A stretch of 64,000 nt of DNA from contig CATNEN010000039.1 in the NCBI GenBank assembly GCA_950097015.1, positions 7,254,001 to 7,318,000 on the forward strand, given 5' to 3'. Position 1 is the first letter of the stretch; the number at the start of each line of letters is the position of its first letter. This document shows positions 23,324 through 45,721 of this stretch, piece after piece. The DNA comes from Macrostomum hystrix. Its lineage: Eukaryota > Animalia > Platyhelminthes. The position numbers were made by a program, and so were the translations under genes. The notes beneath the pieces were generated by a model. That model did no database searches. It was given only the letters and a program-made list of their open reading frames with translations, and was not told the origin of the DNA.

Positions 23324-24091
23324 ATGCAAGCTCTGAAGCGCGTCACCACTGGACATTGGTGTGTGAGCTCTGCCATCGTGGCCGCATTCGTGTGCAGCCA
23401 GCTACTACCAGTGCAGGCTCAGTGCCCAGTCCCGTTCAGCCTGCAGGCCGGCAGGTGCGTGTTCGTCAACACCTCGCAGAGCTTCAGCTGGTGCTCGGCC
23501 AACCAGCAGTGCGCATCGATGGGAGGCGAGCTCGTCAACACGTACGACACCCTGGCGCTGCTGAACAACCTGTCCGAGCTGAGTTTCAACAGCTCAGTTT
23601 GGATCGGGGTGTCCGACCTGGCGGATGAGAGAAACACCAGTCGGATGGGTTGGCAGAGGATTCTCGACCGAGGACTCCTGCCTCTGGACAGCTCGCTGTG
23701 GGATCCAAGTGATCCAAATAACAAAGAGTCAAATCAGGACTGCCTTGGCAAGACGATTGATGGATTCCATTTGGCAGACCTATTCTGCACCTCTCTGCGC
23801 GGATTGGTATGCGAGTTCACGAGGGATGCGCCCTCCACGGCAGCCCCGTGGCAGCGGACTGAGTTCAAGCGTACCAGCTACAATTACCCCAGCACTGGCT
23901 ACTGCTACACCGACTTGCCGCAGGTGAGAAATGCGATGCATTGCGTGGCTGCTGCCAAGCGAATCGGCAGCAGCCAACAACTGCTGTACAACCGCAAGCT
24001 GGAACTGTGCCGCCTGCTGCAGTTCACAGACGCTCAGGTCGAGGAGGCGATCGAGAACAGCGCCGACTGGGTGAAGTACTCCATGAGCTGA
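23324..24091 (+). CDS. Secreted C-type lectin + PAN/apple-like protein, copy 3 (255 aa), near-identical to copy 1
   Basis: I see only four nucleotide differences from 16018-16785. Confidence 0.9.
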   Translation: MQALKRVTTGHWCVSSAIVAAFVCSQLLPVQAQCPVPFSLQAGRCVFVNTSQSFSWCSANQQCASMGGELVNTYDTLALLNNLSELSFNSSVWIGVSDLADERNTSRMGWQRILDRGLLPLDSSLWDPSDPNNKESNQDCLGKTIDGFHLADLFCTSLRGLVCEFTRDAPSTAAPWQRTEFKRTSYNYPSTGYCYTDLPQVRNAMHCVAAAKRIGSSQQLLYNRKLELCRLLQFTDAQVEEAIENSADWVKYSMS

Positions 24092-24314
24092 AGCAGCTCG
24101 CATGAACATTGTTGCTATTGGCAATAGCACGAATAGAATCGAGTGGAAAAGCATTGTATCGCCTGGAGTCTAGCCTGCTTTTCAAGAACTGCGTGGATGC
24201 GTTTTTTCGCGTGAAACGAACAATATTTTCTCTCTTTTTGTACATGTCACTCGTAGGGCTTTGTGACTTTGAAACCTCGCCGGACCACTTTCAGGGGGGT
24301 TCAGAAATGAGGAC

Positions 24315-27300
24315 GATAGCTGGTGCTTATGATAGCTGATGCTTATGATAGCTGATGCTTATGATAGCTGATACTTATGATAGCTGAAGCTTATGATAGC
24401 TGATGCTTATGATAGCTGATGCTTATGATAGCTGATGCTTATGATAGCTGATGCTTATGATAGCTGATGCTTATGATAGCTGATGCTTATGATATAAGCT
24501 GAAGCTTATGATAGCTGATGCTTATGATAGCTGATGCTTATGACAGCTGATGCTTATGATATAAGCTGAAGCTTATGATAGCTGATGCTTATGATAGCTG
24601 ATGCTTATGATAGCTGATGCTTATGATAGCTGATGCTTATGATAGCTGATGCTTATGATAGCTGATGCTTATGATAGCTGATGCTTATGATAGCTGATGC
24701 TTATGATAGCTGATGCTTATGACAGCTGATGCTTATGATATAAGCTGAAGCTTATGATAGCTGATGCTTATGACAGCTGAAGCTTATGATAGCTGATGCT
24801 TATGATAGCTGATGCTTATGATAGCTGATGCTTATGATAGCTGATGCTTATGATAGCTGATGCTTATGATAGCTGATGCTTATGACAGCTGATGCTTATG
24901 ATATAAGCTGAAGCTTATGATAGCTGATGCTTATGATAGCTGATGCTTATGATAGCTGATGCTTATGATAGCTGATGCTTATGATAGCTGATGCTTATGA
25001 TAGCTGATGCTTATGATAGCTGATGCTTATGATAGCTGAAGCTTATGATAGCTGATGCTTATGACAGCTGATGCTTATGATATAAGCTGAAGCTTATGAT
25101 AGCTGATGCTTATGATAGCTCATGCTTATGATATAAGCTGAAGCTTATGATAGCTGATGCTTATGATAGCTGATGCTTATGATAACTGATGCTTATGATA
25201 GCTGATGCTTATGATAGCTGATGCTTATGATAGCTGATGCTTATGATAGCTGAAGCTTATGAGAGCTGATGCTTATGACAGCTGATGCTTATGATATAAG
25301 CTGAAGCTTATGATAGCTGATGCTTATGATAGCTGATGCTTATGATAGCTGATGCTTATGATAGCTGATGCTTATGATAGCTGATGCTTATGATAGCTGA
25401 TGCTTATGATAGCTGATGCTTATGACAGCTGATGCTTATGATATAAGCTGAAGCTTATGATAGCTGATGCTTAAGACAGCTGAAGCTTATGATAGCTGAT
25501 GCTTATGATAGCTGATGCTTATGATAGCTGATGCTTATGATAGCTGATGCTTATGATAGCTGATGCTTATGATAGCTGATGCTTATGACAGCTGATGCTT
25601 TTGATATAAGCTGAAGCTTATGATAGCTGATGCTTATGATAGCTGATGCTTATGATAGCTGATGCTTATGATAGCTGATGCTTATGATAGCTGATGCTTA
25701 TGATAGCTGATGCTTATGATAGCTGATGCTTATGATAGCTGAAGCTTATGATAGCTGATGCTTATGACAGCTGATGCTTATGATATAAGCTGAAGCTTAT
25801 GATAGCTGATGCTTATGATAGCTCACGCTTATGATATAAGCTGAAGCTTATGATAGCTGATGCTTATGATAGCTGAAGCTTATGATAGCTGATGCTTATG
25901 ATAGCTGATGCTTATGATAGCTGAAGCTTATGATAGCTGATGCTTATGACAGCTGATGCTTATGATATAAGCTGAAGCTTATGATAGCTGATGCTTATGA
26001 TAGCTGATGCTTATGATAGCTGATGCTTATGATAGCTGATGCTTATGATAGCTGATGCTTATGATAGCTGATGCTTATGATAGCTGATGCTTATGATAGC
26101 TGATGCTTATGATAGCTGAAGCTTATGATAGCTGATGCTTATGACAGCTGAAGCTTATGATATAAGCTGAAGCTTATGATAGCTGATGCTTATGATAGCT
26201 GATGCTTATGATATAAGCTGAAGCTTATGATAGCTGATGCTTATGATAGCTGATGCTTATGACAGCTGATGCTTATGATATAAGCTGAAGCTTATGATAG
26301 CTGATGCTTATGATAGCTGATGCTTATGATAGCTGATGCTTATGATAGCTGATGCTTATGATAGCTGATGCTTATGATAGCTGAAGCTTATGATAGCTGA
26401 TGCTTATGACAGCTGAAGCTTATGATATAAGCTGAAGCTTATGATAGCTGATGCTTATGATAGCTGATGCTTATGATATAAGCTGAAGCTTATGATAGCT
26501 GATGCTTATGATAGCTGAGGCTTATGACAGCTGATGCTTATGATATAAGCTGAAGCTTATGATAGCTGATGCTTATGATAGCTGATGCTTATGATAGCTG
26601 ATGCTTATGATAGCTGATGCTTATGATAGCTGATGCTTATGATATAAGCTGAAGCTTATGATAGCTGATGCTTATGATAGCTGATGCTTATGATAGCTGA
26701 TGCTTATGATAGCTGATGCTTATGATAGCTGATGCTTATGATAGCTGATGCTTATGATAGCTGATGCTTATGATATAAGCTGAAGCTTATGATAGCTGAT
26801 GCTTATGATAGCTGATGCTTATGATAGCTGATGCTTATGATAGCTGATGCTTATGATAGCTGATGCTTATGATAGCTGATGCTTATGATAGCTGATGCTT
26901 ATGATAGCTGAAGCTTATGATAGCTGATGCTTATGACAGCTGAAGCTTATGATATAAGCTGAAGCTTATGATAGCCGATGCTTATGATAGCTGATGCTTA
27001 TGACAGCTGATGCTTATGATATAAGCTGAAGCTTATGATAGCTGATGCTTATGACAGCTGAAGCTTATGATATAAGCTGAAGCTTATGATAGCTGATGCT
27101 TATGATAGCTGATGCTTATGATATAAGCTGAAGCTTATGATAGCTGATGCTTATGATAGCTGATGCTTATGATAGCTGATGCTTATGATAGCTGAAGCTT
27201 ATGATAGCTGATGCTTATGATAGCTGATGCTTATAATAGCTGATGCTTATGATAGCTGAAGCTTATGATAGCTGATGCTTATGATAGCTGATGCTTATGA

Positions 27301-30300
27301 TAGCTGATGCTTATGATAGCTGATGCTTATGATAGCTGATGTTTATGATAGCTGATGTTTATGACAGCTGATGCTTATGATAGCTGAAGCTTATGATAGC
27401 TGATGTTTATGATATAAGCTGAAGCTTATGATAGCTGATGCTTATGATAGCTGATGCTTATGATAGCTGAAGCTTATGATAGCTGATGCTTATGATAGCT
27501 GATGTTTATGATAGCTGATGCTTATGATAGCTGATGCTTATGATAGCTGAAGCTTATGATAGCTGATGCTTATGATAGCTGAAGCTTATGATAGCTGATG
27601 CTTATGATAGCTGATGCTTATGATAGCTGATGCTTATGATAGCTGATGCTTATGATAGCTGAAGCTTATGATAGCTGAAGCTTATGATAGCTGATGCTTA
27701 TGATAGCTCATGCTTATGATATAAGCTGAAGCTTATGATAGCTGAAGCTTATGATAGCTGAAGCTTATGATAGCTGAAGCTTATGATAGCTGATGCTTAT
27801 GATAGCTGAAGCTTATGATAGCTGAAGCTTATGATAGCTGATGCTTATGATAGCTGATGCTTATGATAGCTGATGCTTATGATAGCTGATGCTTATGATA
27901 GCTGAAGCTTATGATAGCTGATGCTTATGATAGCTGATGCTTATGATAGCTGATGCTTATGATAGCTGAAGCTTATGATAGCTGATGCTTATGATAGCTG
28001 AAGCTTATGATAGCTGATGCTTATGATAGCTGATGCTTATGATAGCTGATGCTTATGATAGCTGATGCTTATGATAGCTGATGCTTATGATAGCTGATGC
28101 TTATGATAGCTGATGCTTATGATAGCTGAAGCTTATGATAGCTGATGCTTATGATAGCTGATGCTTATGATAGCTCATGCTTATGATATAAGCTGAAGCT
28201 TATGATAGCTGAAGCTTATGATAGCTGAAGCTTATGATAGCTGAAGCTTATGATAGCTGATGCTTATGATAGCTGAAGCTTATGATAGCTGAAGCTTATG
28301 ATAGCTGATGCTTATGATAGCTGATGCTTATGATAGCTGATGCTTATGATAGCTGATGCTTATGATAGCTGAAGCTTATGATAGCTGATGCTTATGATAG
28401 CTGATGCTTATGATAGCTGATGCTTATGATAGCTGAAGCTTATGATAGCTGATGCTTATGATAGCTGAAGCTTATGATAGCTGATGCTTATGATAGCTGA
28501 TGCTTATGATAGCTGATGCTTATGATAGCTCATGCTTATGATAGCTGAAGCTTATGATAGCTGATGCTTATGATAGCTGATGCTTATGATATAAGCTGAA
28601 GCTTATGATAGCTGATGCTTATGATAGCTGAAGCTTATGATAGCTGATGCTTATGATAGCTGATGCTTATGATATAAGCTGAAGCTTATGATAGCTGATG
28701 CTTATGATAGCTGAAGCTTATGATAGCTGATGCTTATGATAGCTGATGCTTATGATAGCTGAAGCTTATGATAGCTGATGCTTATGATAGCTGAAGCTTA
28801 TGATAGCTGATGCTTATGATAGCTGATGCTTATGATAGCTGATGCTTATGATAGCTGATGCTTATGATAGCTCATGCTTATGATAGCTGAAGCTTATGAT
28901 AGCTGATGCTTATGATAGCTGATGCTTATGATATAAGCTGAAGCTTATGATAGCTGATGCTTATGATAGCTGAAGCTTATGATAGCTGATGCTTATGATA
29001 GCTGATGCTTATGATATAAGCTGAAGCTTATGATAGCTGATGCTTATGATAGCTGAAGCTTATGATAGCTGATGTTTATGATAGCTGATGCTTATGATAG
29101 CTGATGCTTATGATAGCTGATGCTTATGATAGCTGATGCTTATGATAGCTGAAGCTTATGATAGCTGATGCTTATGATAGCTGATGCTTATGATAGCTGA
29201 TGCTTATGATAGCTGATGTTTATGATAGCTGATGCTTATGATAGCTGATGCTTATGATAGCTGAAGCTTATGATAGCTGATGTTTATGATAGCTGATGCT
29301 TATGATAGCTGATGCTTATGATAGCTGATGCTTATGATAGCTGATGCTTATGATAGCTGAAGCTTATGATAGCTGATGCTTATGATAGCTGATGCTTATG
29401 ATAGCTGATGCTTATGATAGCTGATGCTTATGATAGCTGATGCTTATGATATAAGCTGATGCTTATGATAGCTGATGCTTATGATAGCTGAAGCTTATGA
29501 TAGCTGATGCTTATGATAGCTGATGCTTATGATAGCTGATGCTTATGATAGCTGAAGCTTATGATAGCTGATGCTTATGATAGCTGAAGCTTATGATAGC
29601 TGAAGCTTATGATAGCTGAAGCTTATGATAGCTGATGCTTATGATAGCTCATGCTTATGATATAAGCTGAAGCTTATGATAGCTGAAGCTTATGATAGCT
29701 GAAGCTTATGATAGCTGATGCTTATGATAGCTCATGCTTATGATATAAGCTGAAGCTTATGATAGCTGAAGCTTATGATAGCTGAAGCTTATGATAGCTG
29801 AAGCTTATGATAGCTGATGCTTATGATAGCTGAAGCTTATGATAGCTGAAGCTTATGATAGCTGATGCTTATGATAGCTGATGCTTATGATAGCTGATGC
29901 TTATGATAGCTGATGCTTATGATAGCTGAAGCTTATGATAGCTGATGCTTATGATAGCTGATGCTTATGATAGCTGATGCTTATGATAGCTGAAGCTTAT
30001 GATAGCTGATGCTTATGATAGCTGAAGCTTATGATAGCTGATGCTTATGATAGCTGATGCTTATGATAGCTGATGCTTATGATAGCTCATGCTTATGATA
30101 GCTCATGCTTATGATAGCTGAAGCTTATGATAGCTGATGCTTATGATAGCTGATGCTTATGATATAAGCTGAAGCTTATGATAGCTGATGCTTATGATAG
30201 CTGAAGCTTATGATAGCTGATGCTTATGATAGCTGATGCTTATGATATAAGCTGAAGCTTATGATAGCTGATGCTTATGATAGCTGAAGCTTATGATAGC

Positions 30301-31963
30301 TGATGCTTATGATAGCTGATGCTTATGATAGCTGAAGCTTATGATAGCTGATGCTTATGATAGCTGAAGCTTATGATAGCTGATGCTTATGATAGCTGAT
30401 GCTTATGATAGCTGATGCTTATGATAGCTGATGCTTATGATAGCTCATGCTTATGATAGCTGAAGCTTATGATAGCTGATGCTTATGATAGCTGATGCTT
30501 ATGATATAAGCTGAAGCTTATGATAGCTGATGCTTATGATAGCTGAAGCTTATGATAGCTGATGCTTATGATAGCTGATGCTTATGATATAAGCTGAAGC
30601 TTATGATAGCTGATGCTTATGATAGCTGAAGCTTATGATAGCTGATGTTTATGATAGCTGATGCTTATGATAGCTGATGCTTATGATAGCTGATGCTTAT
30701 GATAGCTGATGCTTATGATAGCTGAAGCTTATGATAGCTGATGCTTATGATAGCTGATGCTTATGATAGCTGATGCTTATGATAGCTGATGTTTATGATA
30801 GCTGATGCTTATGATAGCTGATGCTTATGATAGCTGAAGCTTATGATAGCTGATGTTTATGATAGCTGATGCTTATGATAGCTGATGCTTATGATAGCTG
30901 ATGCTTATGATAGCTGATGCTTATGATAGCTGAAGCTTATGATAGCTGATGCTTATGATAGCTGATGCTTATGATAGCTGATGCTTATGATAGCTGATGC
31001 TTATGATAGCTGATGCTTATGATATAAGCTGATGCTTATGATAGCTGATGCTTATGATAGCTGAAGCTTATGATAGCTGATGCTTATGATAGCTGATGCT
31101 TATGATAGCTGATGCTTATGATAGCTGAAGCTTATGATAGCTGATGCTTATGATAGCTGATGCTTATGATAGCTGATGCTTATGATAGCTGATGCTTATG
31201 ATAGCTGATGCTTATGATATAAGCTGATGCTTATGATAGCTGATGCTTATGATAGCTGAAGCTTATGATAGCTGATGCTTATGATAGCTGATGCTTATGA
31301 TAGCTGATGCTTATGATAGCTGAAGCTTATGATAGCTGATGCTTATGATAGCTGAAGCTTATGATAGCTGATGCTTATGATAGCTGATGCTTATGATAGC
31401 TGATGCTTATGACAGCTGAAGCTTATGATAGCTGATGCTTATGATAGCTGATGCTTATGATAGCTGATGCTTATGATATAAGCTGATGCTTATGATAGCT
31501 GATGCTTATGATAGCTGAAGCTTATGATAGCTGAAGCTTATGATAGCTGATGCTTATGATAGCTGATGCTTATGATAGCTGAAGCTTATGATAGCTGATG
31601 CTTATGATAGCTGATGCTTATGATAGCTGATGCTTATGATAGCTGAAGCTTATGATAGCTGATGCTTATGATAGCTGAAGCTTATGATAGCTGATGCTTA
31701 TGATAGCTGATGCTTATGATAGCTGATGCTTATGACAGCTGAAGCTTATGATAGCTGATGCTTATGATAGCTGATGCTTATGATAGCTGATGCTTATGAC
31801 AGCTGAAGCTTATGATAGCTGATGCTTATGATAGCTGAAGCTTATGATAGCTGAAGCTTATGATAGCTGATGCTTATGATAGCTGATGCTTATGATAGCT
31901 GAAGCTTATGATAGCTGATGCTTATGATAGCTGATGCTTATGATAGCTGAAGCTTATGATAGC
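24315..31963. repeat. 7.6-kb satellite of a 16-bp unit
   Basis: Unit GATAGCTGATGCTTAT with variants GAAGCTT, GACAGCT, GCTCATG, GATGTTT and a 19-bp GATATAAGCTGAAGCTTAT. Confidence 0.98.
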
Positions 31964-33009
31964 GAGGCGAAGGAAGCGAGAAAAACGACGGGATTTTCTT
32001 TTACTCGTATAATACGAGCAATAAACGAAATATAACACAGTATTTTGCCATGAAAAATGGAATTTTTTTTCTGAGCATGTTTCTGTGTCTGATACGAAAC
32101 GAGTAACTAGCGAGGCAACAAGTGTCAGCCTTCAAATTTACGAGACCTACGAGACTGGCTCGTAAACCAGCCAGTTTCCATACACCCACACGCATGGGTA
32201 ATGAGTCTAAGAAGTCCATCTGAAGGACTGCAATTATCTGTGAATTTGCAGCTTTTAAACCTGGAAAGGCGAGACCTGAAAATTTATCTTCTTAAGGCAC
32301 ATAAGCTGGACTTAACGTGGGGCTTTTAAACTAACAACTAAAACTTTTTAATTCGGATTAAAAGGCCAGGCTCAAAAGCCCATTAATTGCTTTCCTGTAT
32401 TTTTTATCTAATGCGTTTCTGCTACATATGGTAAAAGTAAAAGGAAGGTCTAATTGTCCTCAGGTTGTCATATTACATTTTTGCCACCCGAAATGACAAC
32501 CGCATTTACGTTAAACGCAACACTCCCAAATATGTCCTACGTCAGGGCAGTGTGTACACTTTCACCTTGCACCTTGGAGGTTGGCACTCAATGGCGTAAA
32601 TTGCATGACAAACCTCTAATATAAGACTCCTATTTGGCTGCGCCACAAATTAAAGCAAAACGCGTTATTTACTACTCAAACCGTATTAGCGTTTTATTGA
32701 AAAAATAGTAGAGTCAATAGAGCGAGTAATAATTGGACAGGTTCACAACAAATCGGCATGATGTGAGTTCGGATCGATAGTTCCTTGCTTTCCATCGTTG
32801 TCTGTCTGCGTCCTTATCAGAGAGTGCACCAACTCCATATTGCGAGCATCAAAGTGCAGTAGCTCGTAGTGTCAGCAGGAAAATGTTGTATGCCGTGAGG
32901 CCATTCCACTGGGAATTGGACGGCTACAAAGAGAGTGATAAATTTAGAGTAGGATAAATTAATGATTTTGTCGATTCTTTCGTATGTTTCTAGGTTAACA
33001 AAGTTTGTG

Positions 33010-34372: not shown

Positions 34373-37300
34373 ATGAAGCACGTCAGACCGCAGACGGGCC
34401 AGCAGCCAACAGCTCCGAGCCAGTCTCTGAAGCAATTCTGCCAGTACACAACGGCACACGGCTTGGGCCGGTTTCAGTCGCAGAGCAGCCTCTACGGTCG
34501 ACTCATCTGGCTGACCTTTCTCATTGGGACTTACAGCGGATTCGCGTATCACATGTACACGCTGTTCGATCGGTTCTTTAGCCTGCCACTGCTCACAAGC
34601 TTTACTACTACGCTGGCTTATCGATTTCCAGACGTTTACCTGTGTCCGAACGATGCTCTGTCAATCAGTAAGCTCACTGACCAGTCCCAAGCTGTAGAGT
34701 TGAACTCGCTGCTGAACTGCGACACCAAGTGCAAACTGGACTTCTTGGCCTTCGATATCATTGGGGCCAAGCCCAATCCGCTGACCAGACCACCGAGGCT
34801 CAATCAGCCGGCTTTGGCTCTGTCCGACACGCTGGCCGCCGTTGAGACCGGACTCACGCACGAGTTTCGCTTCATCATGCAGCGAGGTGAGACAGCTAGG
34901 CTTGGTTGAGTTTTTGCGATGTCCACGATTGTCCACGACAGCGACATGAGTGCGATTGCACATCATTTGGTGTTTGTAGGACCACAGTCAGCGAAGAGGC
35001 AATTCTGCCTATTTCGCCGACACCTGACGCAGGTATCAGGCATACACTAACACAGGGATGTGTACACCTGGCTTTCTCATCGTCGGGCAGTGCACACCTT
35101 CACTGTGCCTTGAAGGTTGGCCCTTATGCGAGACAATCGCCAAACCTTCACTCTGCTGCTGTCCCCCCAAATGAATGTGGCCTCGCCGCGGATTGGAACT
35201 CAGGGACCTTGGAACCTTATGCATACAAACTGTTTTTAAATAGTCATGCTTATGCTCTCGTTTAGACCAAATGGTTTTATTGTCTAATAGCATTAAGTCA
35301 TGGCCTCCAGCGTGGTACGTAAGCTGGGTGTTCAAACAAAGTGAGATTTCTTATTGTGCAACGCTTCAAGAACCATAGCACAGCTAGTCATTTTAGAGCT
35401 TGAGTAGCCTTGGCGATCAATACAGCTTTATACTAGTACTCAATCGACCAGCTCTTAGCACACTGATCGCAGATAATCATAAATATGCTCTAAGCCTGAG
35501 CATTTTAGCCGGTGTTTCCTGCTCAACAGATCAACACTCCGATCAACGGAGCATTTTATTGAGATTAAAAGAACGCATCGGGTGCGAGGAACAGACCCCT
35601 TCAGAGACTTCAGCTAGCTCATATAGACTCTCGTGTTTGTCAGCACAACGAAGGAGATTCTTACGGGGTCCTCAACTGCTTTCTAGATTCTATAAGTTGC
35701 ACAGATAGAAGGCCGATAAATTGAAGCGAACAATTGAAGGGAATTTAAAGCTTGAGTTACTGAGTAGTTTCCAAAGTACACTTGCCTTTCTCAGTGAAAA
35801 AACTCTTAAAATTAGAACGACCCGGGGCAGTGTTTCAAATACCCTAATCTTTATTTTTTCTTTATCTCTCAAAATATTTAAAATCTCCCAAAATCTCCCA
35901 AAATCCAGAGCACAGGCAAAACTTGCTCCGCTGTATAAGATGAAACAGCTTTCAGAATCACAAAACATCGGCATCGTCGAGATATTCAACGATTCTAGTG
36001 TAGACCAGTGCAGACTCACCATAGAGTTTATACAGACCAATGTTTGTTGTCCTTGTTACCAGGTCTCTGACAAGTATGACTGATGATCTCGACGATGCTA
36101 ACTCGGGCGGCTTGGAAAATTAGTTCATTGTAAAGAGCGGAAAATTTTGATACAGACGGTGGACTTTTAGGTAAATCGGTCATTCGGTTAGGGAGCAATC
36201 GTGAAGTAGTCAGCGGGTATTTGAAATACCTCCGTAGTCTTTCCCCAGGGGGGAAATATCCTGCTCTTTCTGCTGTTAATAATAAATAAAGTAGAATAGA
36301 AATTACATGACAGCCGATGCAGGCCAGATATGCAGACAAGTGGCTTCCAAAGACTGCATACAGCTGTTCAGTCCGTGGACTGTTTTTACAGAATTAATAA
36401 CACACATTTTCTCCCTTTAGCTGAGAACGCTTTGGTGTCCGTTAGACCAGTGGCTGCTGTGATGCCAGCATTTTCGGGTATTACTGCTCTGTTCAGCTTC
36501 GATTTCATTGCAAGTCGTCGGCCCCCACCCTGAGTGCAGTGTGAACTGAGGATTCAACTCGCCACAGTTTCTCATCTTAGGGTTTACAGACCGAGAAAAG
36601 GACAAAAATTTTGAAAAAAAACATTTCAGTGGCGTCGTATGAAATTAGCATTTTTTAGGACATTCGTTGGTGCAGTCCCTTGTGTCTGTGCGGTTGTTAA
36701 TTCTGGACTACAGAAATGCCTGCAGTCTACGACTGGAGTGGTCAGCTGGATATGTTATGTTTGCGCTCGTATTAATTCTGATGATCATTATTCCGCCTAC
36801 TCATGCCGCTGATCCCAAAGTCTAGAAGCACTTTTATTAATTAAGGATAATTTAATTCGTTGCAATTTGCATAGCTAACCATTGTGAGTACAGAAGTGTG
36901 GCTTTTGTTCCCCAGAGTGGTCCCTAATTATCTTGGCATTGTTCTCAACCTGAAATTTTCTAGACCGTTGACTCATTCCACAGTGACTCGTCTAGTTAGA
37001 GTGCCGCTAGCAAATCTGCATGCAATGCTCCCTCAAACTCCTCCTCCAAGCTGCATCGAAGTCAAACCGTCTGGAGTGCCGCTACACAGCCAGTGGCGAG
37101 GAGTATGGCGGGCAGACCAGCAGAGCCGCCATCTACTCGGTCAGCACACTCTACCAATCACTTCAGCCCGCCGAGTTGGACAATCGATCAGCGTCGAGCA
37201 TCGCAGTGCCGCTCCTGACCAGTGCGAGCTGTCTGGCCTGGAACGAGGCTGCCAGAAGGTTGGGCAGAATCGAGGGCCGATTCAGTACTAATGCTGGACA

Positions 37301-40300
37301 TCTGGCGAAACTTATTCTCGCTGCGAATTTCTCGGACGAGGAGACTCGGTGCCGGCATCCACGAGGACTGCCTCTGACGACCGTTCAAGACCTGGGACTC
37401 GCGACTTGTGAGTAGAAGTGAAAATTACACTTCGCTTTTTTCACTTTTTAGGTTGCTGCCAATTGATAATGTAGCATAATTATGAAAGTAGCTTTAAAAT
37501 TAAAATACTAAATAGCTCCCAAGCTGAATGACCGATTTCGTGAAATTACACGATCTGAATCAAATTTTCCGCCCTTTACAGTTTCCGCCCGCAACAATAG
37601 TCAACAATGATGGCCTCTACATGACGAAATTTTGTGAGCAGAGAAACTGCCTTTATTGGTGGTTTCTGCCACCAGACACCCCGACGAGAATCGTTGAATA
37701 TCTCGACGATGCAAATGTTTTGTGATTCTGGAAGTCTTTTCATCTGATAGAGCAAAAAAATTTAGCCCAGGCTCTTGGTTTTCATGACGAGTGGCTAAAT
37801 ATTTTGGGACATACAGAAACAAGGAAAATGTGGCTGTTTTAAAATACTGCTCGTGTTTTTTCTACTGTTAATAGTCTCTAAAATTAGAAGTTTTTTCATT
37901 GTTCCGAAAATTAAATTTTTCGGAATCGAAAACAAAACAAGTGAAAAAAACGAAGGAAAAGAATGAAATAGACTTCAAATTAAGAAATGGATCTGGTTTT
38001 CAACTTCTATTTGGCACCTAAAATGGTCTACATCTACAATAATCTAAACGAGAATATACGAGCCGCCGTACGTGGATATAGAATCGCGTCTAGAAGCGCA
38101 TAAGTAGACATAAAAATGGTGTCGAGATATTAGTTCGACAGCTCGCCTATTTAATCTGGAACATGAGGCGTTTAATTGCAGATCAAATTTAGTTGAGGCA
38201 AAATAAGCCGAATCGCTTCGTTACATGTCTTATGGATTTAGGTATCTTGTGAAACAAGTCATTATCTTCCTTTTCCTTAATGTCTTCCTTTCTTGGGCTC
38301 TAGGGCGAATAGCTTTGACCAGTAAAATCTGCGATATCTCCCGAGCCTTGGCTCATGGATGAGGAAGTCACGTCAAACTTCGTCACGGTGAAGATTTCGA
38401 TGAGTTTTTTTCACAAAAAACTTATTTGACTAATGTCGCTATCCAAGTAGTCAGTTCTTGAGTTATTTATGCAATCAGTTAATGACACAAAAATGTAGCA
38501 GTGCACTTCCAGAACTAATTGGCAAATGGATCTATAGAGTCGTATTAGTAAACCTATTTTTGATTACATGGAAAGGGTTGTCTATATTTAGAACCACTTT
38601 GCAATCAAATCAATCGATCGCTTACCGATATCGATTTGCTGCTGATTTTCCTGAGTACATAATATCCCAATTATGCAGTCCCAACATCGAAATTTAGTCC
38701 CAAAAAGTCCCGATTTTTCAGCAGCGAATGGGCACTAGCACATCACTTGGCGACAATACCATACTGTCCATTCCTGACCGCACATGCTCAGGCGCACTGG
38801 ATGTAGGCACATACTGCCCTGACTCTCTCGTTACCAGGCTGCAGTGTACACCCTCACCCTTGAGCTAGACGCAGTAACCGCTCTGACACTTAAAAAAGTA
38901 AAAAAACTTTTGCCCTCGATTTCGACTTTCACTCGAACAGACCCGATGCGAAAGTTGATCGGCTGTTTTCAACGCAGCTACGTCCTCGACCGCCTTAGTC
39001 AAACTGTTGAATGCTTCGGTCAGCAAGCTCGCTTTCTGACTGCCGAGTCGTGCCAGGAGTGCTGCTACACTCGAAACTTCACCCACATGGTGCTGGTTCA
39101 GAGCAGCTGCCTCTGCGGCTTCGCGACTGCGGGCCAGAGTGACGCAACTGTTCAGGATGATGTCAGCGATCAGGCTCTGTTCAGGCCGATGCAGAAATCC
39201 GAGCCAGAACTTTGCTGGGACGTTCGAACTGAAAACTCCACTAGCCTGTACCGAATTCGCGAATCAGGTCAGAGTTCATTTAGAGATGAAAGTGACATGC
39301 CCTGAGCAGCCATCATCAATCATTAATTTATGAGCAGAGCGCGACCGATGCCGAATTGCCAGCAGGAAATTGGGACTCTGTCAATTGCGACCCCCGCACG
39401 AACTATGGCCGCACTGAGTGTACCTGTAAAATAACAGATTCGATAACTGATAGTAGAATAGATAAAGTGCTTTTGATAGTGAGAAGTACACAGACGTTTA
39501 TTTCTTAGCGATCAATTCCTTTGAATGAAGCTACTTCAAGTAATTACTTGAAGTAATCGCCTTTCCGAGGGGGTTGTAGCCTAGTGGTTATCACGTCAAA
39601 CTCGGACTTCAAGGTCGGGGATTCGATTCCTATCATTACTGGAACAATTCCCGTCGTTTAGCAAGACACTTGCCTTACCTACTCCAGTCTATGGACTGGA
39701 AATTCGTACGCAACCTTCGGATGTACCGTGCATTAGCTGCGACTCTTTTTCCCGAAAAATGAGGCTGACTATCGCTACTCAATTATTTCCAAGTTGAACG
39801 ACGCAGATAGGTAAACTGAGTCCAGTAGCTTCTCACGAGCATTGATACTTTTATGAAGGCATTCGCTTCACTTACTCTGTGCAGTCGAATGGTTCAGGCC
39901 GCTGTTTCACGTGTTACTCGACCTCCACTGAATCTCCCACAGCTTGGAAGCCGGTGTTTGTGCCATTCCGTCCAGAAGCCGTGAGCTTTTTCGATGGGCC
40001 CTACTGCTTCTACGACAGCGGAGATGGGCAGATTTCGGCAGCCTTCTGCAACATACCTTACTGCGGTGAGTGGGTGTGTGTGGCAGCAACATGCCTTACT
40101 GCGGTGAGTGGGTGTGTGTGGCAGCAACATGCCTTACTGCGGTGAGTGGGTGTGTGTGGCAGCAACATACCTTACTGCGGTGTGTGGGTGTGTGTGGTAG
40201 CTGTGTACCTGTGAATAGTATCGGTGTTAGTGTGTGTTCAGGAGTCAGCGAAATGGGCAGAATTGCCTCCTCGCTGGGTCTAGTTTCACCACATGATGTG

Positions 40301-43300
40301 CCAGTGCCCACCTAGCCCTCCTGCACAGTCGCCTGATAAAAATTCATTCAAAGAAGGCCTACTTTTTCAATGTAAAGTTTGCTTCTTTCAACATGGTTTG
40401 CTTAAAAGGCCCAGGGACATTGTGTGATGACATAGGTCATCGGAGCAAAACCAAAAAGGTTGCACAGTTTCATGGTTAATTAGAATAATTATCAGATTAG
40501 CTCGTGCTTTGCAAATTCACATAGCCGTAAAATGCCTCTTGGCTTTGCAGCCATTCCTTCGAAGTACGACTGCAGCATCAGTAGCAGCGGCGACTCACCC
40601 AGCGCGGACAAGCCAGGCACAATGGAAACACCGCAGGCGGACCATTTCAGCCACTACACCGGTGCCACAAACCGGACCGTTAATGCGAGACATTGTCAGG
40701 CGTGGACCGATGTAAAGCGAAATCTGCAGTCGGGCGCTTGGAAAATCTATGCCCTGTTCGATGGCAAAAAAACTGCGCCCTGGCTCACTCGAGGCCTGCC
40801 GTTCACCCGTGAGTGCAAAAAGCATTCACATTGTTTGGCCACTATTTGGTACACTTGAAAATATTCTGTGAAGCTTTGAATTAGGCTGTGTACGGCTATT
40901 CAGTCCATAGACTCAGGCCCAGTCAATCCAACGTTAGTAACCATTTAACAGCTGGGGGACTGGAGCAATGCAGAGTTTTGTTATAAGTGTCGTGCTTTAA
41001 AATACACAAGTTGTCCTTGTGGAGTAGGGAATCGAACCTCCGACCTTCAAGTCGTAAGTCCGAAGCTCTAACCATGAGGCCTCAAACCCTATTGCGGATA
41101 TGGACTGAAATGTGTCCATAAGCATGGGTCTCTGAAAATAATAAACAGCTTCATATATTTTTCAACTCACAAAGATGATGAAAATATCCGCGATTTAAAC
41201 GTCTTGCCTTATAAAGCTACGGTCTTTTTTAGTTCCAGAAAAACTATTCCTATCGATCTTCAAAGTGAGTTTCATACAGCTTGAAACTTTTACATCGCAG
41301 TCCTCTTTGCAGCCTGATTATCACAGCTATCGCACACTGTTTATGAGGCCATCTGTCAAATAAAAAAACGGCAGACGGTTGCCGTAATTCAGTTCAAATG
41401 TTTGTTTTACTTTATTTATCTTGCTGAAGCTGGTTTTGACAGTATTTAGCGAAGCTGCTCAGTGACAGGAAGAGCGCCAACTCCAGTGAGAGATTTTTTA
41501 GGCAAACACTCGGAACGTATTAGCTTTCAAATGATCATTAATCATGCGAATTTCAGACCAAAGCTACCAGGTGCTGAATGTGCACATGGACACGCCGGAC
41601 TTTGAAGCGAGCGGCACTGACGGCCTCTGTCGCTCCGTGCTGATTGTGATTGACACGCTTTACACTCTGAGCAACGGTAGCCGAGTATTTCGGTGAGTGT
41701 CCTCTATTCACTCATTACTTGTCACTCCCTCACACTTCTGTCCTGTTCGTTTTGACTAGCTGAGTCATATGCTCTCACTTTTTTTCGCGCTATCTGATTG
41801 GTAGCCAGCCCTTCAGACCGTCGAGATATTCACCGGTTCTGGCCGAAAGTCAGTTTTTTTCCCGTAAGAGCTAGTCTATTTCATGCACCCCAGTACACAA
41901 AGTTGCACTGCGCCTCAGTGCGGCCTTGCCAGGCCTTCAAACTTTATGAGCACGTCACCAGAATGTGCCTGCATCATCTCCGACTTGCAGGAACATTCGG
42001 GTAACTTGATTATTGTTTCAGAAGATGCGCAACAAAAAGTTGGCCCGTGTTCTTGAGTTTTCGTATGCTTGCGTTGCTCCGTTCGGGTGCAGCAAAAATT
42101 AACGTCCCCTCCCCTGGGTATAAAAACGGGCAGCGAAGTCCATGTATCCCTGGGATTTGACCTAGTTTGTTTCCAATCAAATCCCGCAGTCGAGAGCCCT
42201 ACCTGAGTTCCGGTACGCCAGGTTGCTTCACACTCAAGTTTTCCTACCTCGCTTTTGAGAAGTGCTCAATCGAGAGCTGCTGTGAGTCGAATGAATTTTT
42301 ATTCGTAATGTGAAAGCATTAGTGCCTACTAACAGTAGTTTTATCTTACATTTAGTATCGGATCTAAGATTGAACTGTACAAGAAATAAACTACTTTTAG
42401 ACGAAATTGTCCCCAGCGTGACTGCAGTTCTGCGTGACTCGCTGGGTACTGGCCTGCTGGCCAGGCAGTTCAGCAGCGAACTCGGCACCTCAATGTCCAA
42501 GTGCACCTTCGGTGATCGAAGCTGCGACAGCAGCCACTTTGTCACTGTGCTACATCCGGAGCTGGGCATCTGCCACAAATTCAAGAAGGAATTGTTTGTG
42601 ACCAACGGCACTGGCGCCTTGGCTAAGCTAACTATAAAGTACTTCTCAGACAAAATGGACTCGTTTGGTCATGCGTACGAGAACTACAGCAAGTTGGCGT
42701 ATGCTATTCGCGATACAAGACACATATCTGAATCGCAGAGTGCTTTGAAGGTAATATAAACATAAGGCAGCATTTAAAAGGCGATTATATTTATCAACAA
42801 ATAACTTCCATATCGAATTGGAACGCATGGCTGTGGACAATGGCACATCATTTTGTGATAGTAGAGCCACAGCCAGCGAGACACATTTTTGCCCATTCTG
42901 CTGACTCCTGAACACACACGCGCACACAAACACAGGCGCACAGGTGTGTACATCTGTCCTGACTTTCTCATCGTCAGCCAGTGTACACTCTCACTTTGCC
43001 ACGACGCTTGGACACTTTGCCACGAAGCGTGAATTGAAAGAAAAACCAATTCAAGGCTTCTGAACTCGAACTCTTCTGAAGTCTTCTAAACTCTTCCGAA
43101 GTCTTCTAAACTCTTCCGAAGTCTTCTAAACTCTTCTGAAGTCTTCTAAACTCTTCTGAAGTCTTCTAAACTCTTCTGAAGTCTTCTAAACTCTTCTGAA
43201 GTCTTCTAAACTCTTCAGAAGTCTTCTAAACTCTTCAGAAGTCTTCTAAACTCTTCCGAAGTCTTCTAAACTCTTCCGAAGTCTTCTAAACTCTTCAGAA

Positions 43301-45721
43301 GTCTTCTAAACTCTTCCGAAGTCTTCTAAACTCTTCCGAAGTCTTCTAAACTCTTCTGAAGTCTTCTAAACTCTTCTGAAGTCTTCTAAACTCTTCTGAA
43401 GTCTTCTAAACTCTTCTGAAGTCTTCTAAACTCTTCAGAAGTCTTCTAAACTCTTCAGAAGTCTTCTAAACTCTTCTGAAGTCTGCTGCGCCCAAAATAA
43501 ATGAGGCTTCGCCGCGGATTCGAGTTCAGGGACGTCGGTGTTGGAAGGCAAACGCGTTAAGCGCTCTGCGAACCACCCCCCGTGACCGCCGCTACCCCGC
43601 CCGAAAAAAATGAATCGTCAGTATTCTCTTGGGGATTTCTCCCAAGTGGATTTCTCAGCAGTATCTGGTCGCTGAATGTATATTTTTATGAAATCCTTGA
43701 ACTTTTTAGATAATTTGAGAAGCAACTTCATGGTAGGCTTGAAAACGAGGTGCTCAGAAAATTCGAATTGAAATATGCGAAGACTAAAATTCGATACGAG
43801 TTTGTGGTAACATCTGGACTTTGACCTCTATGAACCAACCGCAGGTGATTGTTGTTCCCCATGGCGCCTATCCGTGGACCAAGGAGGCCGTTGCGGTGTA
43901 TCCTGGTCAGCACGTTGAGCTAAAGCTGCGGTTCGATAAGAGTACACGCTACTCAAGGTCGCCCCAGCAGCCCTGCTCTACAGAGAAAAGCAGTGTCACG
44001 TATCGATTGTCTTCGTGGAATGCTAACAGCACCATAGAATTATTTAAGTGAGTTGTAGAAAGCCTAATAAGGGTACAGTCTGTGTGACAGTCATTGTCGT
44101 TTATAATGACTTCATTGCAGAAAGTTCGTTCAGTAAATTATAATATTTTTACAGACTTTACCAGCAGCTGCCTATTACTTTCGGCGAGAACGGCTGGAGA
44201 AAGAAGATTAAAATGCTTCGCGATGCCCTGACGACGATCAGCAATGCCAAGTGAGCTGGGGGTTTGAAAATGCCACCTAAATTAGATGTCATGTCTGACA
44301 GCACTGTCAAAACGCCTTTGCAGGGGTCCCATGCTGACAACGATTCACTTCCCGCTGGCAACTCGCACCGACTGCATGAACAACTTTATCGTGCAGAAAT
44401 TTATCAGCCTCTGCAAATGCCTGCCATCCGGCTTGCCAGTTCAGGAGATGCATTTTGCCAACTACACGCACTGCTTCAACCACACTGACGCTGACAAGCT
44501 CTTGTCGGATGAAGCTTGCTACCAGCAGCAGCTGGCGAACATGGCGCGCTTCGACTCCGAGGCGCACGACTCCTGCCTGCCAGAGTGCGAGACGCAGCGC
44601 TACTCTATCCGACAGTCTTCCCATCCTTGGCCGAACCTTCGCCGCGAGACTGCCGTCAAGTTTCTCAAGCTCCTGGCCGAGCTGCACGGCTACCCGGAGA
44701 AGATGCGCTCCAGTCGAGGCGAGTCAGCGATCTACTTTATGTACGAGCGTGCCGCCCAACTCGTTGACCAGCCAGACTCGGAAAGAACATTAGAAGACTG
44801 GATCGACTTCGCTCGCCAATTGGAGGCACTTCAGGATCAGCTGGCGATGGTCAGCGTACAGGGCAGACAGGCGTTTGGCGAAGAGACCTTCGAAGAGGAA
44901 GCCTATCCAACCAAGAACTTGCTGGCAGACATGGGAGGTTTGTCAACATCATTTAGTGTCTGCTTCGTACTGTTATTCCCATATAAAAATGCTTTTGACG
45001 CGATAGAGGAAAGTTCTGAAAATTTCTAATTGACCACGCAGTTCCAGTCGGAAACCTGATGTGGAGTCAATTAAAGCTGGAACACTTGGTAACGTTGGTT
45101 ACCAAGATAGATAAGATCCCAGAGAGCAGGATGTTATTGCTAAAAATAGAAACTGACGTCATCTAAAGGGCCACCTGACAAAGTGGTCCCTTAAACAGCA
45201 GGATGCCGTTGCTAAAAATAGAAACTGACGTCATCCAATGGGGCACCTGATATTGGGGGTCGCTTAAAGAGTGGGTACCGTAGCTAAAAATAGAATCCGG
45301 TGTATGCATCTAAGAACTAGCAGGAAAAGAAATGCTAGAACCGAAAGTGACGCATTTTTTATAAGGAATCTAAAAACTATTTATAGCTTTAAAGTAGTCG
45401 TGATTGGAAAGTCCTAAAGAAAAATATTTATGCTGACATCTTCAACTCCGATCCCTAAATGACACTACGCCTATTCCAGGAGCTCTCGGCTTGTGGTCTG
45501 GCGTATCAGTGCTGACCGTCTGCGAGCTGGTCGAGCTTTGCATCTACCTGGTGGCAGCGGTGAGATACCGCATAACGCAGGCGCCGTCAACGCAAGCTAG
45601 AAACAGCTCAACCGACGGCGCGGACTCACCGCTCAGAGTGACGGGATCTTCAATGGGCGGCGTGCACGCTAGGGTGGTCGCCACTGACGAAGAGGTCTGG
45701 CAGGCGGAGACCAACGCGTGA
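34373..45721 (+). CDS. DEG/ENaC family channel subunit with kringle- and WSC-like inserts, ~1,120 aa; exons 34373-34886, 37051-37407, 38941-39267, 39943-40065, 40551-40808, 41175-41264, 41557-41692, 42190-42281, 42428-42750, 43845-44047, 44155-44250, 44324-44937, 45480-45721
   Basis: N-terminal TTAHG, TM1, FPDVYLCP; KCTFGDRSC..ELGICHKF; VIVVPHGAYP..VYPG; Cys-rich thumb (CMNN..CKCLP..C..CLPECE); TM2 LLADMGGALGLWSGVSVLTVCE. Splice phases are consistent throughout. The channel core is high confidence; internal exon choices are moderate, and extra small exons such as 37601-37633 are possible. Confidence 0.82.
34955..35212 (-). mobile_element. SINE family B partial copy in ENaC intron 1
   Basis: CAGCGAAGAGGCAATTCTGCC..CACTGTGCCTTGAAGGTTGGCCC..CAGGGACCTTGG. 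Confidence 0.7.
39569..39725 (+). mobile_element. SINE family A copy (internally deleted) in an ENaC intron
   Basis: GGGGTTGTAGCCTAGTGGTTA..TTCGATTCC..GCAAGACACTT..CAGTCTATGGACTG. Confidence 0.72.
40049..40198 (+). repeat. 38-bp tandem repeat spanning an exon end and its splice donor, running into a SINE B tail (to ~40325)
   Basis: Unit GCAACAT(A/G)CCTTACTGCG-GTGAGTGGGTGTGTGTGGCA, about 4 copies. Confidence 0.85.
40883..41089 (-). mobile_element. SINE family A copy
   Basis: Reverse complement has GGTTAGAGCTTCGGACTTACGACTTGAAGGTCGGAGGTTCGATTCCC. Confidence 0.7.
42826..43581 (-). mobile_element. SINE family B copy split by a minisatellite
   Basis: Body at 42826-43000 and head at 43485-43581, same orientation, on either side of the 20-bp array. 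Confidence 0.72.
43066..43483. repeat. 20-bp minisatellite (~21 copies)
   Basis: Unit CTCTTC(T/C/A)GAAGTCTTCTAAA. Confidence 0.95.
45125..45300. repeat. Degenerate ~72-bp tandem repeat (2-3 copies) in the last ENaC intron
   Basis: AGCAGGATG..TTGCTAAAAATAGAAACTGACGTCATC at ~45126 and ~45198; GCTAAAAATAGAA again at ~45283. Confidence 0.75.

Follow-up and report, generated by a model that had tools for sequence, protein, structure and literature searches.

In DEG/ENaC channels the finger lies at the periphery of the ectodomain, of which it is the most variable part, and it controls gating in ENaC, ASIC and FaNaC. Peptides, protons, proteases and toxins all act at the finger, which holds the peptide pocket of FaNaC and the inhibitory tracts of ENaC that are released by proteases. 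For the mechanosensory members of the superfamily, the route by which external matter or force acts on the gate is a standing question. In the EGAS channels of C. elegans, EGF repeats lie ahead of the ASC domain and leave the finger uninterrupted. These channels, whose name stands for 'EGF plus ASC', are the nearest earlier case of a DEG/ENaC subunit joined to adhesion-type modules on the extracellular side, and they gave zero currents in oocytes (PMC10424705). Here we describe a gene of the flatworm Macrostomum hystrix in which the modules are not EGF but kringle and WSC. The window analysed, by which we mean the whole stretch of 64,000 nucleotides at positions 7,254,001 to 7,318,000 of contig CATNEN010000039.1 (assembly GCA_950097015.1, forward strand), very probably contains a single intact protein-coding gene that, by its structure and domain architecture, encodes a DEG/ENaC subunit with a kringle-WSC-kringle arm in the finger.

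The gene occupies window positions 34373-45721 of the + strand and comprises 12 exons with a total of 3312 nucleotides (nt), that is 1103 codons and a stop (Table 1). The window exons were searched one by one and the junction codons were derived by hand. All 11 junctions are in phase with consensus splice sites throughout, and the codons formed at them (in order GCT, TAC, GCT, GCC, CAC, CGT, TAC, a phase-0 join, AAA, AAG and GGA) include no stop. Exon 1 and exons 8-12 encode the DEG/ENaC channel (Pfam ASC), while exons 2-7 encode the arm (37051-42281, 1293 nt, 431 amino acids), with exons 2, 3, 4 and 5 each of phase 1-1. An earlier sequence-only reading of the window had placed the N-terminus of the channel at 34.4 kb and the remainder at 42.4-45.7 kb, which is borne out by Pfam ASC matches in exons 1, 8 and 11, and the motifs it quoted are all found where it put them, with six cysteines in order in each kringle. 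Its estimate of about seven inserted exons adding ~460 amino acids has to be lowered to six exons and 431 amino acids, its exon list lacked the small exon at 44155-44250, and its start of exon 8 at 42428 gives way to 42401, which homology makes the most likely position (ESC-Y-EIVPSVTAV in the window against C-Y-AAVPSVTGAV in Macrostomum lignano). The two borders of the intron between exons 5 and 6 are placed with the least certainty; a shorter in-phase pair there (40711 for the end of exon 5, 41571 for the start of exon 6) is disfavoured because the loop would be far shorter than in all homologues.

The DEG/ENaC landmarks can all be read in the window. These are TAHGLGRF and the first transmembrane segment (TM1) in exon 1, FPDVYLC, the beta-ball, the palm, the thumb, and a second transmembrane segment (TM2) with LGLWSGVSVLTVCELVEL in exon 12. 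The filter position of TM2 is G-V-S, and both transmembrane regions align to FaNaC. The cut-off of Pfam ASC (PF00858), 23.6 bits, is exceeded by exon 1 (53.8 bits) and exon 11 (44.9 bits), and full-length homologues reach 131-147 bits. When a family profile was compared with the PDB, the top solved matches were the FMRFamide-gated channels 7yvb (E 4.9e-19) and 8on7 (E 2.2e-16), followed by ASIC5 and ENaC gamma. The arm replaces ASC profile positions ~90-149. When aligned to 7yvb, the family profile pairs its positions 17-126 with residues 64-174 and its positions 566-609 with residues 196-239, and ~440 of its positions stand opposite ~22 FaNaC residues. Because of the 7yvb and ASC alignments we place the arm in the finger, after its first helices and before the beta-ball, in agreement with the sequence-only reading. 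As the pore and gate motifs are intact, the protein is expected to function as a Na+ channel.

The six cysteines of kringle 1 are divided between exon 2 (ECR, SCLAW, RCRHP) and exon 4 (GPYCFY, AAFC, IPYC), and those of kringle 2, a domain with two long loops, between exon 5 (YDC, HCQAW), exon 6 (GLCRS) and exon 7 (PGCF, EKC, ESC). The landmarks Y-x-G, C-x-x-W, x-C-R and P-[WY]-C are present together with the kringle order of cysteines, and the cysteines are invariant across the family. In the family alignment of kringle 2, T-x-D, N-x-C-R and all six cysteines are invariant. The kringle reference profile used with hhalign was made from 15 canonical kringles of the same genome. Against this profile the family alignment matched over the whole of kringle 2 (columns 10-91, Prob 88%, E 3.1e-6), the exon 2-type exons from eight paralogues covered columns 3-66 (Prob 83%, E 9.1e-6), and the exon 4-type exons covered columns 66-92 (Prob 81.5%, E 1.2e-5). 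The two halves of kringle 1 are complementary and meet at column 66, where the WSC exon sits, so that the WSC domain is nested within kringle 1. The point of insertion is the kringle 1 hairpin between Cys3 (CRxPxG) and Cys4 (GPYCF). The sequence-only reading had named kringle 1, WSC and kringle 2, and all three are present; its placement of the WSC domain between the two kringles is replaced by one inside the first. The region of the lysine-binding pocket is broken up in both kringles, by the WSC domain in kringle 1 and by the long loops in kringle 2, and we make no claim that either binds lysine.

The exon equivalent to the WSC exon of the window gives 45, 30.7 and 24.4 bits in paralogues and 39-41 bits in the M. 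lignano homologues, with a cut-off of 27.8 bits. In the PDB comparison the family profile matched the WSC domain of Kremen1 at E 1.2e-5 and also a fungal WSC structure. Pfam Kringle scores 8.8-18.9 bits in homologues, and in six of the seven homologues a sub-threshold match lies at the exon 5 segment. A six-frame scan of the genome with Pfam Kringle did not pick up the window locus because the domain is split into short exons. The fold was approached through a sister subfamily that lacks WSC, in which kringle 2 gives Pfam Kringle matches at E 2.8e-7 and 6e-5 and has six cysteines that align with the whole family. An AlphaFold model of sister-subfamily kringle 2, for which the input alignment held family members only and zero canonical kringles, had a pLDDT (predicted local distance difference test) of 63. 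In a structure search of 48,161 chains with this model the best 21 matches were all kringles, with Z-scores of 7.3-5.0 and a root-mean-square deviation of ~3 A over 72-83 residues, and the first match after these dropped to Z 3.0. Among the matches listed by Foldseek for the same model all were kringles, at weak E-values of 0.02-0.1, and an ESM Atlas search with the arm gave zero usable matches.

A phmmer search of 1.84 billion representatives with exon 1 returned long M. lignano proteins at the top (P0001 with 1052 amino acids, P0002, P0003 and P0004), and a cluster look-up added P0148 (1049 amino acids) and P0149 (1033 amino acids) from the same species. In these homologues Pfam reads the N-part of ASC, then WSC, then the remainder of ASC, with zero matches to CUB. 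When five of the M. lignano proteins were aligned to the window by tblastn, they matched exons 1, 2, 3, 4, 8, 9, 11 and 12 in strict order, and exons 5-7 more weakly. Like the hhalign matches to the kringle profile, this correspondence goes well past what chance would give. The same architecture, colinear over all exons at 33-55% identity, is present in the M. lignano PAA proteins BOX15_Mlig007204g1, Mlig006056g1-3, Mlig006398g1, Mlig034226g1 and UniProt A0A1I8 entries, which carry only automatic names ('WSC domain-containing' or 'Kringle domain-containing'). The M. lignano annotation from which the PAA entries derive is made of transcripts assembled from RNA-seq and cut at trans-splice and poly(A) sites, with open reading frames (ORFs) called by TransDecoder (PMC5730564). 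Because the transcripts were split at these sites, a separate gene nested within the channel gene would probably have been cut out. Homologue searches with P0001 and with the family alignment returned M. lignano proteins only, which says little about other taxa, and a homologue search with exon 1 alone gave none in the length range of that search. An M. lignano model that joins fibrinogen to ASC (P0006) was set aside: the M. hystrix genome has no counterpart of it, its halves map to unrelated loci there, and it is probably a chimeric prediction.

In the M. hystrix genome the exon 2-type exon has 10 further matches, each directly downstream of an exon 1-type match on the same strand. All seven of the paralogue loci that were fetched keep the full order from the N-part of the channel to TM2. 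Several paralogues have introns of ~100 nt between the channel and kringle exons or between the kringle and WSC exons; ~100 nt between channel and kringle is a gap into which the promoter of a nested gene would not fit. Long tblastn matches had suggested a continuous ORF of channel and kringle, which was rejected since these matches read through short introns with stops. No conserved start codon or leader was found upstream of the kringle exon among the paralogues. The paralogue order, the ~100 nt introns and the transcript-derived ORFs of M. lignano together uphold the view of the sequence-only reading that this is one gene. The copies that carry WSC are mostly arranged in tandem rows, five at C25:5157000-5202000, two or three at C39:12009000-12036000 (where the paralogue loci L001 and L006 lie, at 12.0 Mb) and two or three at C8:3892000-3911000. 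These rows include one head-to-head pair, and in one copy on C25 the kringle 1 exon contains a TAG. In the least saturated pairs, the ratio of nonsynonymous to synonymous substitution rates (dN/dS) is 0.28-0.30 for the kringle 1 exon versus 0.26-0.38 for channel exons. Judged by these rates, the arm is under purifying selection comparable to that on the channel core.

Several points weigh against this account of the gene and its arm. The splicing of the window copy is deduced from homology and from the reading of splice sites. Of the Pfam profiles to which the sequence-only reading had pointed, ASC exceeds its cut-off, while the window WSC exon, with its eight cysteines, stays below the 27.8-bit cut-off of Pfam WSC (PF01822) at 20.5 bits (E 5.6e-4), and the kringle pieces of the window, taken singly, have no match to Pfam Kringle (PF00051) above any threshold. 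Across the wider family Pfam Kringle reaches at most 31.2 bits (E 2.8e-7), below the cut-off of 34.3. Support for the kringle fold comes from the sister-subfamily domain and not from the kringle of the window itself. A full-length AlphaFold model, made for P0001, had a pLDDT of 38 and was discarded. Finally, DEG/ENaC clones of non-model animals are often silent in oocytes (PMC9234716, PMC10424705).

If the gene is read as we propose, three arms of ~430 residues each would crown the trimer and would bind an extracellular partner that bears glycans, either matrix or a secreted glycoprotein. Binding of this partner, or its pull, would pass to the finger and hence to the gate. That the arm is a docking arm which couples the binding of an outside partner to gating is plausible, and we put its chance at slightly below even. 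The sequence-only reading had likewise inferred a receptor-channel chimera that is gated by an extracellular protein or glycan, or else tethered to matrix for mechanosensing. Within the docking-arm reading we lean modestly towards gating that depends on a partner or ligand and away from a tether that acts by mechanics only, given the size, tandem expansion and divergence of the family. A bolder reading, which we regard as possible and doubtful, is that of a self-contained receptor-channel, in which a captured protein or glycan would directly gate or mechanically load the DEG/ENaC pore, the genes forming a lineage-specific sensory family in macrostomid flatworms. If true, this would be a gating mode undescribed for the DEG/ENaC superfamily and built by nesting at three levels, with WSC in kringle in finger. 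Ready-made binding modules placed on the gating lever, and kept by selection in more than 12 genes, make the family a natural test case.

The arm could also have a role other than gating, in folding, trafficking, clustering, adhesion or proteolytic shedding. Both kringle and WSC are binding modules of general use, and yeast Wsc1 forms clusters by means of its WSC domain (PMC9024836), which would suit such a role. We nevertheless consider it rather unlikely that gating is not involved, as the arm occupies the region of the ectodomain known for control of gating in ENaC, ASIC and FaNaC, and no furin-type R-x-x-R was seen at either arm border in the window sequence.

Less probable again is that the arm is optional and that alternative splicing yields forms with the full arm, without WSC or without an arm. 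The phase 1-1 of exons 2-5 would permit skipping in frame, skipping of exon 3 would restore a plain kringle 1, and the natural subfamily without WSC shows that kringle 1 is viable in that state. The full-length M. lignano database models, however, all hold the entire arm, and the shorter models P0005 and P0007 look like fragments rather than isoforms.

There is only a slim chance that, within a family that otherwise functions, the window copy has fallen silent or is decaying. It is a solitary copy whose introns are much longer than those of its relatives and filled with repeats, its WSC is the weakest of the family, and an in-frame TAG occurs in one family member. Against decay, the reading frame is open through all 1103 codons and the splice sites fit the consensus, the 12 kringle cysteines, the eight WSC cysteines and the HG, FPDVY and TM2 motifs are all retained, and dN/dS of the window exons versus paralogues is below 1, at values of dS that are mostly saturated.

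The idea that exons 2-7 are a separate secreted kringle-WSC-kringle protein nested in an intron of a DEG/ENaC gene, with exon 1 spliced to exon 8, is hardly credible: exons 1 and 8 are both phase 1 and thus compatible, an ATG at 37020 begins a short hydrophobic run (MQCSLKLLLQAA, 37020-37050) in frame and directly 5' of the exon 2 acceptor, and a stop at 42311 follows if the exon 7 donor is read through, but the ATG and leader, the sole feature suited to a separate transcript, are unconserved in paralogues and read as chance, the exon order is kept in the seven paralogues and in three full-length transcript-derived M. lignano ORFs, and without the arm little finger would be left between ASC positions 90 and 149.

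Taking the gene as a single channel subunit with its arm, its origin can be considered with the help of the sister subfamily. In these genes, two at C39:10.38 Mb and one at C3:6.11 Mb, the channel is combined with a kringle 1 without WSC and a kringle 2 in a single exon, and the family as a whole has at least 11 WSC-bearing and three WSC-less genes. Stepwise exon shuffling is the most likely route, with kringles entering the finger intron first and the WSC exon then entering the kringle 1 intron, because exons 2-5 are phase 1-1, WSC occupies just one 1-1 exon within kringle 1, and sisters without WSC exist. After these insertions the family would have expanded, partly in tandem rows. The sister subfamily would be a likely intermediate or, alternatively, the product of secondary loss of WSC, and we do not claim that its intron is identical with the WSC site. 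The family thus offers a clean case of insertion of a domain in a domain in a domain through phase 1-1 exon shuffling, with the form that lacks WSC in the same genome.

Table 1. Exons of the window gene (window positions) and loci of the sister subfamily that lacks WSC.
Feature	Position	Strand	Content	Basis
Exon 1	34373..34886	+	start codon, HG motif TAHGLGRF, TM1, FPDVYLC, first finger segment; ends phase 1, donor GTGAGA	Pfam ASC E 2.1e-14, profile positions 1-90; 38-52% identity to P0001 and relatives by tblastn
Exon 2	37051..37407	+	phase 1-1; N-terminal two thirds of kringle 1 (Cys1-Cys3: ECR, GEEYGG, SCLAW, RCRHPRG); long first loop	hhalign kringle E 9.1e-6; tblastn E 4e-13 to 8e-17; junction codon with exon 1 G+CT = Ala
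Exon 3	38941..39267	+	phase 1-1; WSC domain, 8 Cys, inside kringle 1	
Exon 4	39943..40065	+	phase 1-1; C-terminal third of kringle 1 (Cys4-Cys6: GPYCFY, AAFCNIPYC)	tblastn 38-54% identity
Exon 5	40551..40808	+	phase 1-1; start of kringle 2 (YDC, HYTGATNRT, HCQAW)	splice sites and frame read
Exon 6	41557..41692	+	phase 1-2; middle of kringle 2 (TPDF, GLCRS = Cys3); acceptor TTTCAG, donor GTGAGT	tblastn to P0002 E 5.5e-4
Exon 7	42190..42281	+	phase 2-1; end of kringle 2 (PGCF, EKCSIESC = Cys4-Cys6)	tblastn to P0003; splice sites read
Exon 8	42401..42750	+	phase 1-0; channel resumes, last finger helix and beta-ball (CTFGDRSC, HPELGICHKF)	Pfam ASC E 0.013, positions 149-201; tblastn E 1e-19 to 1e-27; aligned to FaNaC 7yvb residues 196-239
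Exon 9	43845..44047	+	phase 0-2; palm segment (VIVVPHGAYPW)	tblastn E 9e-17; splice sites read
Exon 10	44155..44250	+	phase 2-2; short exon (..NGWRKKIKMLRDALTTISNA)	splice sites and phases fit; resembles a separate exon at L001:6565-6675 and P0148 residues 739-775
Exon 11	44324..44937	+	phase 2-1; thumb and knuckle, with the palm as far as NLLADMG	Pfam ASC E 1.1e-11, positions 295-437; tblastn E 4e-39 to 1e-42
Exon 12	45480..45721	+	TM2 with GALGLWSGVSVLTVCELVEL (G-x-S filter position), C-terminus, stop	tblastn 53-69% identity; aligned to FaNaC TM2
Sister locus L023	C39:10381800-10391799		kringle 1 exons parted by one short intron	
Sister locus L024	C3:6106500-6116499		kringle 1 exons parted by one short intron	

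Several repeats lie within or near the gene. At window 40048-40201 a 38-bp unit is present in 4.1 copies of 96% identity and amplifies the junction of exon 4 and its intron in tandem. The unit consists of the last 18 nt of exon 4 (..CAACATACCTTACTGCG), a GTGAGT donor and 14 nt of intron; the first exon 4 donor alone keeps the frame open, and further reading runs into a stop at 40143. A 20-bp satellite (AACTCTTCTGAAGTCTTCTA, 20.8 copies, 97% identity, window 43069-43484) lies in the intron between exons 8 and 9, and a 72-bp tandem repeat (2.4 copies, 82% identity, window 45125-45295) in the last intron. Dispersed repeats are found in introns at 35900-36000 (+), 37580-37750 (-), 34950-35200, 40100-40310 and 42870-43030, and recur in opposite orientations as the pseudo-peptides SESQNIGIVEIFNDS and ILPISLTPEHT. 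They are probably small mobile elements that have lengthened the introns of the window copy compared with the compact paralogues. Upstream of the gene, ~8 kb at window 24001-32000 differ from the rest of the window in having a G+C of 0.37, a constant GC skew of +0.32 and an AT skew of -0.12, and look like a long strand-biased satellite. The WSC domain itself is expanded across the genome, with 436 candidates at first look and 150 scored above the cut-off, many of them in long near-identical tandem arrays such as those at C7:5.91-5.94 Mb and C1:8.45-8.50 Mb.

The channel part of the window gene is closest to FaNaC (7yvb, 8on7), with which it shares HG, TM1, FP-x-V-x-C, the beta-ball C-x-F..C and the TM2 motif GG-x-LGLW-x-G-x-S-x-LT. 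The finger, which is also the site of extra sequence in FaNaC and ENaC, is where they differ, since FaNaC has ~22 residues between the same anchors at which the window gene has three recognisable autonomous domains in 431 amino acids. In oocytes, no response to peptides was seen with three further M. lignano DEG/ENaC genes that lie close to the FaNaC branch, and the study mentions no extra domains in them (PMC9234716). The identifiers of these assayed genes differ from those of the homologues found here.

A search of the accessible literature returned no paper that combines kringle or WSC with ENaC-type channels and none on the M. lignano homologues, in agreement with the sequence-only reading, which knew of no characterised DEG/ENaC of this architecture. 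Many sister genes conserve the design, which is uncharacterised, and database proteins that share it already exist in M. lignano. Polycystin-1, among sensors of force or matrix, carries a WSC domain on the extracellular side of the membrane. Yeast Wsc1 (PMC9024836) likewise has WSC outside a membrane sensor, as here; neither is a pore subunit of the DEG/ENaC type, and the resemblance serves as a lead only. Nearest in domain content are the Wnt co-receptors Kremen1/2 (PDB 5fws, 5fww), which bring kringle and WSC together as the window gene does, and the kringle of Kremen1 was matched by the sister kringle 2 model at Z 5.5. The pairing with Kremen drawn by the sequence-only reading therefore holds for the two types of domain and not for their arrangement. 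Kremen, a receptor that crosses the membrane once, carries its kringle, WSC and CUB domains one after another, whereas in the window gene the WSC domain is nested in a kringle, a second kringle follows, CUB is lacking, and the whole arm lies inside a channel.

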